The translations under genes were made by a program, and so were the position numbers. From NCBI RefSeq assembly GCF_964204645.1, contig NC_134034.1, positions 2,852,072 to 2,916,071 of the forward strand: DNA of 64,000 nt, in the 5' to 3' direction. Numbering within the stretch: the stretch's first letter is position 1; every line of letters starts with the position of its first letter. The DNA is from Tubulanus polymorphus (lineage: Eukaryota > Animalia > Nemertea). This document shows, piece by piece, positions 32,686-35,600 of the stretch. The notes beneath the pieces were generated by a model that was given only the letters and a program-made list of their open reading frames with translations, made no database searches and was not told where the DNA came from.

Positions 32686-35600
32686 GCACTTCAACGGCGT
32701 AACCATGGCGATAACTGCCGTTTCGAATATTCGAAATTTGCACTTTGAAATCGCCAGTGGTCAGAAATTGTTCTTGGAGTGAAAATTATCAAGAACGGCA
32801 AATCAGGCTGCGATTGAATAGCTCGGAGAATCACAATTGCGGTTGAATTCTTTTCTTAGAATTTTTGGGCCATTTTCAAAATCTTCCAGACCGTTGTTTC
32901 GGCTTCTCCTGAGGTTTTTTTCGTGTCAACACTTTAATCGAAGAAGAAAATTATGTTATTTTCATCGAAAACGAGACATTTGAAAAATTGAAATGATATT
33001 TTTAGATTCCGACGTTAACGACAACCGAGAAATGTTAAACGCTCAGGCCTTGAATCGGCCGAACAATGAACAATCAATCTTCTCAGTCGAAGTGAAAAAA
33101 GGTATGAAGAAAAAACCTTATTCGAAAAAAAGTTGGTTTTATCTCCGGGGGTGGGGGAGTCCTTGGGGGGCCTGTACATCCCGGGATCCAGTTTCACAAA
33201 GCTAGAATAATTCAACTGCTGTTAAAACTCATCATCATGATTTTACTGAATCGTTGAAGTCATCGAGAATGAGAAGGTTGTCATTAGTAACTAATCGTAA
33301 TTTTACTGAGTCATTGAAGTCTTGTTCAATCATAATTTTACTGAATTGTTGAACTCATTGTAAACGAGAAGGCCTCGTTGGCAACTGATCATAATTTTAC
33401 TGAATGAAAGAAGTCCACGGGGAATGAGGAGGTCATGATTTACCATAGCTTTCATGTGAATGATGGAAAGGTCTTGCTGGGTGTTTTGTGAAACTGTGGT
33501 CTCAGGGTTGATGTGACGATGATATGACATAGTTTTACAAACCCTAATTACTGTTGTGCAAGTATGTATCATGTGTCTTGTAACCACCGCCCCCCCTCCC
33601 TCCCGCACTCTGATTGTTGTGTTTGATTACTATTCAGGAAATAAGTTATTTCCCACCTATAACTCTGTGACGTATGTTTGCAAGATATAGAATGTCAATG
33701 AGTGCTCTGCGATCTACTGTGGTAATTGAAGTTACCATTTATGGCAACTGAGGATCCATCAGGATGACGCCACCTGAGGTGACTGTAGAGTATTAAACTC
33801 GTGGCAATTGGTGATCCACCAGATGGCACTAGTGTACAGTAGGACATCAACTACTGTGGCAATGGAGGATTCCACTCGTGGCGAGTGATGATCCACCAGA
33901 TGGCACTAGTGTACAGTGGGACATCAACTACTGTGGCAATGGAGGATTCCACTCGTGGCGAGTGATGATCCACCAGATGGCACTAGTGTACAGTAGGACA
34001 TCAACTACTGTGGCAATGGAGGATTCCACTCGTGGTGAGTGACAATCCACCAGATGTCGCTAGTGTGCAGTAGGACATCAACTACTGTGGCAATGGAGGA
34101 TTCCGCTTGTGGCGAGTGACGATCCACCAGGTGGCACTAGTATGCAGTAGGACATCAACTACTGCAGATTCTAGCATCATTTTCTAAGAATCTCGTCATG
34201 ATTCTTTTTCAGCAGCAGCTCCCGGAGTCGTCGCCCAGCCCCGGCACGATGACATCGTAGCGCCCTTACCCGCTGCGTTGTCGGAAGATGATAACGAGCA
34301 AAAATCCGGGCATTACGATTTGGTCTTAACAGATCGCGCTTACATCAAAGTCGACAAACCGTAAGTTAGAGAAATTTTTCTATTTTTCGACGGTTGATCA
34401 GATTATCAAAAGCTGTTTTGATTCGGCCGTTTAATCAGTTCGTATCGATGTGAATATTCTTCACACCGAGTTCATCGTAGATGATTAAAATCAGTTGCGT
34501 TTTAAACGCGAGAAAGTAACTGCGGTATGATCGGTTCAATATGAATCATAGCCACGTGAAGAAACCATGTTTCGTTGCGTCAAACTATGCGCGTTTGAAA
34601 TATCTGACTTCTATATTTTGCGTCTTCGTATTTTCAGGTTCAAAGACACGCAAGACGCCGAGGAACTGTTGGCCATCGTCGAATCCAAACTCGGTTTAAA
34701 GCCGGGCTCGTTCTCAAATGTGCAGTACGTATTAGTACGACAACCACACGATAACCACACTCAAACGTGGTGAACGGATAAAAAGATAAAACCCACTATC
34801 TACAGATTAAAAGACACCTGACGATGATCTCTAGGGTGAGATCGAAACGTCGTGTTTATTATATATTTTAGATTGTTCGATTGAATAAATTCTTGATATT
34901 AAATTGTTTTAATCTGTAGATAGTGGGTTTTTATCTTTTTGTGCAGTACGTATGTATGTAACTACGATCAATAGTTTGATGTCGAACTGGATCAACGGGA
35001 GTAGTTTTACAATCGACTTCAGAATCGAGATATAGTGTGACGTGCGTAGATAGGATATATACGTGTAGGAGGTGAGAGACAGAGGTCTCAAAACTTCGTG
35101 ATAAATCTGCGTCGTCTTTGTTAAAAGATGAACACCTAGGTTTCTAGTACGATAACCACACTCAAACGTGGCGGACGGATAAAAAGATTACAACCCACTA
35201 TCTACAGATTAAACGAATTTAGAATCAAGAATTTATTTATTCGAACAATCTAAAATAAATAATAAACACGACGTTTCGATCTCACCCTAGATCACTCGAT
35301 CTGACACCTGACGATGATCTCTAGGGTGAGATCGAAACTTTGTGTTTATCATATATTTTAGATTGTTCGATTGAATAAATTCTTGATTTTAAATTTTTTT
35401 AATCTGTAGATAGTGGGTTTTAATCTTTTTGTGCAGTACGTATGTTTCTTTGAAGCTTGATTGACCTTCAGGCAGAGCCAGAATTTTTTATGTGGAGGTG
35501 CTCTGCTGCAGGCCCCTACTTAGAACGTACCCACGCCCCCGCTTATTGAAGAATATCTGCCCGGATGCCCGCCTAAAGAAAATTTGAGCGGCAATTTCGA

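Follow-up and report, generated by a model that had tools for sequence, protein, structure and literature searches.

The window analysed here, a 64,000-nucleotide stretch of Tubulanus polymorphus DNA, contains a presumed host exon of 87 nt at 34638..34724 on the plus strand. On the evidence of the sequence and the list of open reading frames, it has an open frame, is preceded by an acceptor ending in ttttcag, and ends at a splice donor (CA/GTACGT) at 34724/34725. The preliminary description had assigned this exon to PTPRN2 (IA-2), which is a putative identity. The exon (29 codons), searched alone, had no match in Pfam, and the Receptor_IA-2 (PF11548) and RESP18 (PF14948) profiles had no match in the genome when it was searched exon by exon. 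PTP-domain exons are located on the same strand at C10:2948622-2952714 (+), 32-37 kb past the end of the window.

The donor is followed by a non-coding insertion of ~210 bp with the organization of a Penelope-like element (PLE), consisting of two head-to-head arms (insertion 1, about 34733-34939). By alignment, its PLE tail occupies 34733..34779 on the minus strand, where TAGT is joined to the tail and 11 nt are duplicated internally, and corresponds to the RNA 3' end on that strand. The tail-bearing arm (34780..34813, minus strand) is 5' truncated to the terminal ~34 nt of the unit. Head-to-head with it lies a full-length, tail-less second arm (34814..34939, plus strand), which carries a hammerhead ribozyme (HHR) motif at its 5' end and stops at the proximal start site of reverse transcription (RT). 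Insertion 1 is bracketed by a 14-nt target-site duplication, TGTGCAGTACGTAT, whose first copy (34719..34732) spans the final 6 exon nucleotides together with the splice donor, so that the donor of the presumed exon was duplicated (second copy, 34940..34955).

A second insertion lies directly downstream. The stretch 34956..35148 (plus strand) is identical, except for one 1-nt gap in the pairwise alignment, to the flank of another family copy, L002, located at C10:2206340, 680 kb upstream on the same chromosome. Next come the tail (35149-35180) and tail-bearing arm of insertion 2 (35149..35291, minus strand), in which the minus-strand HHR has lost its CUGANGA box at the apex. The second arm (35299..35429, plus strand) is a mosaic of L002-like and copy-1-like sequence, and its HHR has GUC/ACGU changed to UUU/ACUU. 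The third copy of the target-site duplication (35430..35445) provides a third donor, after which the original intron resumes. Three identical copies start at 34719, 34940, and 35430, with splice donors at 34724/5, 34945/6, and 35435/6, and the donor copy lying upstream retains the native exon context.

The hammerhead motif and its significance

The minimal type-I HHR motif of insertion 1 is located at 34812-34857 on the plus strand, ~87 nt into the presumed intron, where a sense orientation is plausible. The sequence reads exactly as first described: AGACAC (34812-17), the CTGACGA box (34818-24), an extra T (34825; U, between A9 and G10.1), stem II formed by GATCTC (34826-31) and GAGATC (34838-43) around the loop TAGGGT, GAAA (34844-47) followed by CG and then TC, the GUC triplet (34849-51), and GTGTTT (34852-57). 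The predicted cut lies between 34851 and 34852, and an ACGU palindrome (34847-34850) replaces helix III. The AGACAC taken as one side of stem I is present, but the match is partly fortuitous, as its AG derives from the junction with the truncated inverted arm; the HHR of the element family begins with CACCUGACG. The AATAAA reported at 34884 is also present (34884-89) and is simply part of the AT-rich family sequence.

Minimal HHRs of metazoan PLEs were described by Cervera & De la Pena 2014 (PMC4209133). The stretch 34818-34851 contains CUGANGA (C3-A9), GAA (G12-A14), the A15.1-U16.1 pair, and the NUH triplet. In addition, the additional nucleotide that separates position 9 from 10.1, the G10.1-C11.1 pair (G34826 with C34843), and the palindromic 15.2/16.2 of that description were all found. 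At the level of sequence, it is thus confirmed that 34812-34857 (+) has every feature of a metazoan PLE minimal HHR, and its classification as a minimal type-I hammerhead of Penelope type, in which the ACGU palindrome stands in for helix III, was supported.

In a single window, a loose core pattern by itself gave 1 match against 0.58 expected, with at least one match in 41 of 100 shuffles, which is not significant. The full motif occurs far more often than chance would produce. The 31-nt HHR core had 456 exact genome matches and the control pattern 0, and the generic pattern CTGANGA-N14-24-CGAAACGT had 3751 genome matches compared with 10 for the control. A covariance model was trained on the HHRs of this genome from six families, excluding the motif's own family. 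The model matched 34809-34860 (+) with 40.9 bits (E = 3.2e-9) and the second copy at 35299-35350 with 33.9 bits, and it found nothing else in the window.

In a 91-nt scan, Rfam Hammerhead_1 (RF00163) aligned end to end at exactly 34812-34857 with 11.9 bits, compared with a gathering score of 34; relative to this model, the motif lacks the 4-nt loop III and has a long stem II. Across the whole window, no match attained the gathering score of any Rfam model. A 4-kb Rfam scan by E-value yielded no hammerhead, only spurious microRNA-hairpin matches on the palindromic second copy.

Further evidence was obtained from the comparison of 8 HHR families of the genome, in which the columns of the catalytic boxes were invariant. 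Across helices I and II, 82% of cells paired, compared with 28-46% in slid controls. Both sides changed in 10 of 12 pairs, the observed covariation score was reached by 0 of 500 shuffles, and RNAalifold recovered both stems I and II. Within the motif's own family, conservation was barely higher in the HHR than in the rest of the unit (major-allele frequency of 0.90 vs 0.87), as expected of neutrally decaying copies, and covariation between families was therefore used.

Copies and architecture of the element family

The preliminary description had suggested a ribozyme-bearing retroelement family, and a short family of this kind is borne out by the counts. At least 1485 candidates were obtained at first look, and the 268-Mb assembly contains at least 748 tails (tail pattern; control, 0) in addition to the exact HHR cores given above. 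The copied unit is ~165 nt long, with the HHR at its extreme 5' end, ~89 nt closing in a GTGGG box, and an optional 36-nt tail that holds a small stem-loop. Full copies are ~250-nt near-perfect palindromes.

The classification of architecture covers tail-bearing copies, in a sample of 60 that were anchored on the tail. The commonest class, with 17 of the 60, combined a truncated tail arm with a full second arm, as in insertion 1. Sixteen copies were solo, 7 had both arms full, 7 had a full tail arm and a 5'-truncated second arm, 4 had both arms truncated, and 9 were of other types. Among dimer copies with examined ends, the target-site duplications mostly measured 11-18 nt, the tail was found at one end only, and the second arm stopped at the proximal site. 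The one-end tail, the inverted 5'-truncated copy, the 5' truncation, and the variable target-site duplication are those of PLE insertions. Arms were more similar within a copy than between copies (96.6% vs 92.7% identity), and 6 of 35 copies had identical arms. The family contains subfamilies with diagnostic changes, e.g., a 4-nt indel.

The 5' ends of the arms were sharply set at the HHR start in 55 of 95 arms. Among the same 95 arms, none began exactly at the HHR cut site, and the nearest started one base before it. A pile-up at the cut site was considered as a mark of in vivo cleavage and was rejected, as a single near arm of the 95 remained after realignment. No shared sequence was found upstream of the HHR in solo copies, and thus no longer element is hidden there. 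Snap-back synthesis also occurs, with short apex palindromes in some solo units, which counts against both-strand priming.

Relation to autonomous Penelope-like elements and known systems

The genome contains many open RT + GIY-YIG frames of 817-841 aa. In its autonomous PLEs, the module of HHR, GTGGG box, and tail has the same geometry as in the short family, and one PLE family checked at two insertion ends had both tail-bearing and tail-less 3' ends. Insertion 1, with its ~210 bp, holds no RT/GIY-YIG reading frame, and when the element was compared by BLAST with 22 PLE-candidate loci surrounding GIY-YIG matches, no extended similarity appeared. The link to a parent, which the preliminary description had proposed to seek in a linked RT/GIY-YIG frame, was drawn instead from the geometry of the module and a tail-to-start-codon pattern. 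At 3 places, C2:14491383 (+), C6:8725053 (+), and C75:12222 (-), the tail of the short family continues into ATTATGTTACCCACGGA, a sequence similar to the beginning of the reading frames of PLE A and B; at one of these junctions, an exact HHR lies 136 nt upstream. These junctions make it probable that an autonomous parent exists, a PLE that shares the tail and, at one place, the HHR of the short family. On that view, the short copies may be leader-only or extremely short products of this parent, and the earlier proposal of a non-autonomous family is qualified in this respect: the family exists, but it may not form an independent lineage.

As in the metazoan PLE HHRs of PMC4209133, the motif has CUGANGA and GAAA boxes, a long helix II (6 bp), a short helix I, and the palindromic 15.2/16.2 in lieu of helix III, and such motifs occur by the thousands per genome, mostly singly or as opposite-strand pairs 100-700 bp apart. 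Unlike those HHRs, the present ones form a new sequence family in another host, with opposite-strand cores 13 nt to ~110 nt apart. As described by Craig et al. 2021 (PMC8557442), EN+ PLE insertions combine a pLTR with an inverted copy that is 5' truncated and carry a tail of 30-40 bp at one end. The one-end tail (36 nt here), the inverted 5'-truncated partner, and the variable target-site duplications are shared with the present family. In contrast to published EN+ PLE insertions, only the ~130-165-nt leader module from HHR to tail is present, with no reading frame.

As reported by Frangieh et al. 2024 (PMC11167929) for an anole PLE, RT in vitro begins at two internal sites on either side of the tail, at 85-92 nt from the HHR cut. 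The corresponding distance from the HHR cut to the proximal end is ~89 nt here, and an uncleaved RNA as the template is a further likeness to the EN+ PLE of that study. Both target strands were extended in vitro, with no strand difference seen (PMC11167929), whereas the tail-anchored sample here was strictly asymmetric, with the tail on one arm only.

Two kinds of short ribozyme-bearing elements are also comparable. Animal non-LTR retrozymes (Cervera & De la Pena 2020, PMC7229834; Li et al. 2026, preprint) are likewise short and non-coding with a type-I HHR. They too seem to have come from PLE pLTRs and to rely on PLE enzymes. Unlike retrozymes, whose head-to-tail tandems yield circRNAs, the present units are dispersed, solo or head-to-head, and flanked by target-site duplications. 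The SINE-like Sm-alpha elements of Schistosoma (Ferbeyre 1998, as cited in PMC4209133) are similar in being high-copy, short, non-coding retroposons with an HHR. In Sm-alpha the HHR is canonical, its helix III is short and its loops contact each other, and no head-to-head or tail architecture is known from these elements. The present family differs in its minimal HHR without helix III and in its head-to-head arms with a tail.

Origin of the insertions and consequences for the host intron

Considering all the above, we regard it as very probable that the motif is the HHR of a Penelope-like retrotransposon within a very short PLE-type insertion and not a free-standing cellular ribozyme. In the proposed mechanism, the PLE reverse transcriptase/GIY-YIG endonuclease would cut the target with a putative stagger of 11-18 nt, and cDNA would be primed from both target strands on the HHR-unit RNA. 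The arm started at the distal site would carry the tail, the arm from the proximal site would be tail-less, and the two cDNAs would join head-to-head. For insertion 1, the tail arm would have halted after ~34 nt and the other arm would have been completed, leaving a single intact plus-strand HHR. We infer both-strand priming from the DNA architecture and one in vitro study of a lizard PLE; transcription, cleavage, and the RNA 5' end are predicted. A further, less likely possibility is that the hundreds of solo and head-to-head HHR-tail units are leader-only retrocopies: the PLE enzyme would initiate at its two internal sites, close to the 5' end of the PLE mRNA, with both nicked target strands serving as primers. 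The HHR would serve the element as a conserved part of the PLE 5' leader/pLTR module, whereas in the host pre-mRNA it would be a passenger, probably cleaving little if at all.

Instead of by-products of a parent PLE mRNA, the short copies could possibly represent a separate SINE-like lineage, non-autonomous and with transcribed masters of its own, using PLE enzymes in trans, although we consider this doubtful. The excess of short copies over tail-to-reading-frame junctions (~750 to 3) would fit such a lineage, as would the subfamilies with diagnostic changes such as the 4-nt indel and the sharp arm 5' ends at the HHR start. However, a PLE mRNA that starts at the HHR, in a PLE lineage that itself evolves, would equally well give a sharp 5' end and subfamilies. 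Insertion 2 includes ~192 nt of the L002 flank, as though read-through from a short copy had been copied anew, but its mosaic second arm fits DNA-level recombination better than retrotransposition.

It is improbable that the sense-strand HHR is active in the host pre-mRNA and lowers or regulates expression of a receptor phosphatase gene by cutting the intron co-transcriptionally. The core and the cleavage triplet are intact, on the strand of the presumed exon and shortly past its donor. With most of the antisense arm of insertion 1 absent, no long hairpin traps the HHR, and stems I and II form in predicted folds of the element and of the intron context. However, without helix III the HHR needs a partner, and the sole same-strand one, 490 nt away, has ACUU for ACGU. 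Predicted monomer and consensus folds prefer an inactive rod in which GANG is paired with CGUH, and a 111-nt pairing is possible between the HHR arm of insertion 1 and the antisense arm of insertion 2. Published minimal PLE HHRs showed no monomer cleavage and weak dimer cleavage (PMC4209133), and the anole PLE HHR was cut only with PLE protein added (PMC11167929). Moreover, insertion 1 is young, one of hundreds, and without sign of host selection.

The same 490-nt spacing of two same-strand HHR motifs might recall a retrozyme, whose transcripts self-cleave at two sites and circularize into small circRNAs, and animal retrozymes have been proposed to derive from PLE pLTRs (bioRxiv 10.64898/2026.07.22.740005). 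This origin is very unlikely, as none of the 60 tail-anchored copies was a head-to-tail tandem, the second motif is damaged in helix III and the cleavage context, and the spacing reflects two separate events and not a repeat unit. A MITE, or fold-back DNA transposon, whose termini are inverted repeats and which contains a hammerhead-like sequence by chance, as the near-perfect palindromes of full copies and the microRNA-hairpin character of the weak Rfam matches to insertion 2 could suggest, is hardly credible and was rejected, being contradicted by duplications varying from about 11 to 18 nt where a MITE has a fixed length, a 36-nt non-palindromic tail confined to one end, independently varying arm lengths with common solo arms, and a module shared with RT/GIY-YIG elements.

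For the host gene, the insertions are of little consequence: sited at an exon-intron border, they triplicated the donor and brought into the intron a ribozyme motif that is weak, together with a long inverted repeat. A PLE hammerhead insertion is a known kind of element, and the sequence family itself is new. The family also makes plain why, in genomes of this sort, annotation with Rfam overlooks hammerhead motifs by the thousands. Each insertion records the RT start (tail or none), the length of each cDNA, and the mode of joining. If the leader-only origin is true, these copies would document in nature, and in large number, a mechanism known to date from in vitro work on one lizard element only, with the added rule that the tail is copied on one arm only. 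This clean, high-copy family could be used to test the internal-initiation, both-strand model of PLE retrotransposition in vivo.

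The hammerhead motif and its covariation

The motif at 34812-34857 of the plus strand reads AGACAC, CTGACGA, an extra T, GATCTC and GAGATC around TAGGGT, GAAA, CG, TC and GTGTTT, with the GUC triplet at 34849-51 and a predicted cut at 34851/34852. Direct reading of the sequence gave the same letters as the preliminary description, and the identification made there of a hammerhead ribozyme motif (HHR) was borne out by core counts, covariation, and an independent covariance model.

Counts were made over the 268-Mb assembly (77 contigs). A loose core pattern, with 0.58 matches expected per window, was not significant alone. 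The 31-nt core matched the genome 456 times, compared with 0 for the reversed control, and a generic minimal-hammerhead pattern matched 3751 times, compared with 10 for the control. The Rfam type-I model aligned end to end at exactly 34812-34857; owing to the absence of loop III, its score was 11.9 bits, below the gathering score of 34. Six further hammerhead families of the genome, to the exclusion of the family under study, were used to build a covariance model. When the 64-kb window was scanned with this model, 34809-34860 scored 40.9 bits (E = 3e-9) and a second copy at 35299-35350 scored 33.9 bits, with no third match within the 64 kb.

Across eight HHR families of this genome, CUGANGA, the extra U, G10.1-C11.1, and GAAACGU are invariant, while the stems vary. 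When the hammerhead structure was imposed on these families, 82% of cells were paired, versus 28-46% with slid partners. Changes on both sides were found in 10 of the 12 pairs, and the observed covariation was reached by none of 500 shuffles. Unconstrained RNAalifold recovered stems I and II and also a conserved alternative in which GANG pairs with CGUH. This pairing is possible in all eight families (columns 12-15 with 40-43 of their alignment, corresponding to 34820-34823 with 34848-34851). The resulting continuous rod hides the catalytic core and is predicted to be the monomer's minimum-energy fold. Such a rod would lock the monomer inactive, and it may be the inactive conformer behind the dependence of minimal HHRs on a dimer or a protein.

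As reported previously, the minimal HHRs of metazoan Penelope-like elements (PLEs) show an extra nucleotide after A9, G10.1-C11.1, a long helix II, a short helix I, and a palindromic 15.2/16.2 (Cervera and De la Pena, PMC4209133). All five features are present at 34812-34857. The HHR is a real motif; the family that carries it is new, and the kind of element is known. Penelope-type hammerheads, of which the assembly has thousands, and PLE frames, of which it has many that are open, were reported to be absent from mammals (PMC4209133); accordingly, the window (C10:2852072-2916071) is not considered human DNA.

A family of short inverted insertions

The suggestion that the motif marks an element family in this genome was substantiated by genome-wide counts, as the HHR lies in a repeat for which a first look gave at least 1485 candidates, together with the 456 exact cores and 748 matches of a 24-nt tail word (0 in the control). 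The unit was defined from an alignment of 24 copies together with 60 further copies anchored on this tail word. It starts 5' at the hammerhead (CACCTGACG...) and reaches a GTGGG box about 89 nt downstream of the cut. There it ends, or else it continues for another 36 nt through a tail that includes a small stem-loop. A copy consists of a single (solo) unit or of two units (arms) placed head-to-head. Among the 60 tail-anchored copies, 17 had a 5'-truncated tail arm and a full second arm, and 16 were solo units. Both arms were full in seven, a full tail arm was joined to a 5'-truncated second arm in another seven, both arms were truncated in four, and nine were of other forms. No copy among the 60 was classed as a head-to-tail tandem, so the family does not fit the published definition of a retrozyme. 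A fold-back DNA transposon was also rejected.

Where the ends of dimer copies were examined, the second arm stops at the proximal site without a tail, and flanking duplications, mostly of 11-18 nt, surround the whole insertion. The arms were 96.6% identical within a copy versus 92.7% between copies (identical in 6 of 35 copies), and subfamily-specific changes occurred in both arms of the 24-copy alignment; therefore, one template served both arms at insertion. Of 95 arms, 55 start within 7 nt of the hammerhead start, none starts exactly at the cut site, and one starts a single base before it, which argues that the templates were uncleaved RNAs with a defined 5' end. In some solo units (L065, L070, L101, and L104), the apex is a 10-16-nt palindrome of the unit's own 5' end (for example, CATCGTCAGGTG beside CACCTGACGATG). 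These look as if the cDNA had snapped back at the RNA 5' end, a second route to inverted sequence.

PLE insertions are highly 5' truncated, frequently have an inverted copy, itself 5' truncated, at the 5' end, and carry a tail of 30-40 bp at one end only (Craig et al., PMC8557442). For an anole PLE in vitro, reverse transcription started from two internal sites that flank the tail and lie 85-92 nt beyond the hammerhead cut; both target strands were cleaved and extended, uncleaved RNA was used, and the hammerhead cut only when the PLE protein was present (Frangieh et al., PMC11167929). The family fits all of these insertion and priming points. Compared with those PLEs, its insertions consist of the leader module only, and one-tail asymmetry is strict in the tail-anchored sample. 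Head-to-head HHR pairs with 13-110 nt between cores are also common in at least four other HHR families (for example, C1:1110973/1111019, C1:6117000/6117060, and C1:12556557/12556595 on another contig). Thus, the PLEs of this genome seem generally prone to producing short inverted leader-only insertions.

Many open frames in the genome, 817-841 aa long, also have GIY-YIG matches, and both RVT_1 and GIY-YIG were shown in one of them. These frames recur at intervals of about 2.86 kb, in tandem or inverted, and are accompanied by hammerheads of the same architecture. Their 3' module comprises a hammerhead, 70-105 nt, a GTGGGATT box, the proximal end, and a 36-37-nt tail with an ACAC...GTGT stem-loop. 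One such family, PLE B, has one tail-bearing and one tail-less insertion end. An inverted GIY-YIG pair with open frames of 295 and 175 aa and hammerheads of the PLE A family lies about 9-10 kb before the window start (C10:2842334-2843279). No extended similarity between the HHR family and the sampled GIY-YIG elements was found by BLAST. In PLE A and PLE B, the tail joins the start of the reading frame via ATCATGCTACCCACGG and ATCATGCTTCCCACGG. The family's tail continues straight into ATTATGTTACCCACGGA at three places in the genome, one of which has an exact hammerhead 136 nt upstream. From these junctions and the upstream hammerhead, an autonomous parent PLE probably exists.

Two insertions in a presumed intron

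Insertion 1 (about 34733-34939), which carries the HHR, belongs to the commonest of the sampled classes. TAGT and a tail in which 11 nt are internally duplicated come first, followed by 34 nt of the tail arm and a full second arm with the intact hammerhead. Insertion 2 (35149-35429) is a full palindrome, whose plus-strand hammerhead has UUU in place of GUC and whose minus-strand hammerhead is without the CUGANGA box. The 14-mer target-site duplication TGTGCAGTACGTAT is present in three copies: those at 34719-34732 and 34940-34953 flank insertion 1, and that at 35430-35443 follows insertion 2. Either the same target site was struck twice or an insertion with its duplication was partly duplicated.

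The roughly 192 nt between the insertions (34956-35148) match, except for one 1-nt indel, positions 1308-1500 of locus L002, which flank a different family copy 680 kb upstream on this chromosome. The second arm of insertion 2 combines L002-like with insertion-1-like sequence in a mosaic. These likenesses could reflect a read-through (3'-transduction) retrocopy, DNA-level recombination, a template switch, or gene conversion.

Possible effects in the host transcript

An 87-nt segment resembling an exon (34638-34724) has an open frame; its final 6 nt and its donor, CA|GTACGT, fall within TGTGCAGTACGTAT, the copies of which also place two decoy donors 221 and 711 nt inside the intron. The exon alone had no Pfam match, and the Receptor_IA-2 and RESP18 profiles, searched exon by exon, had no match in the genome. 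Exons encoding a phosphatase domain were located 32-37 kb past the window end, on the same strand.

The hammerhead strand is that of the presumed exon. With most of the antisense arm of insertion 1 missing, stems I and II are predicted to form. The HHR has no helix III, its only same-strand neighbor has lost the palindrome, and among published minimal hammerheads, monomers do not cleave and dimers do so weakly (PMC4209133). Cleavage of the pre-mRNA is therefore possible but decidedly unlikely, and the suggestion that the host RNA is cut is unsupported. The native context of the upstream donor is intact from -6 to +8, and so everything 3' of it should be removable by normal splicing. Over 111 nt, the hammerhead-bearing arm of insertion 1 (34830-34940) shows 92% complementarity to insertion 2's antisense arm (35181-35291); therefore, the intron transcript could form long double-stranded RNA. 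This predicted duplex might be acted on by editing or small-RNA pathways.
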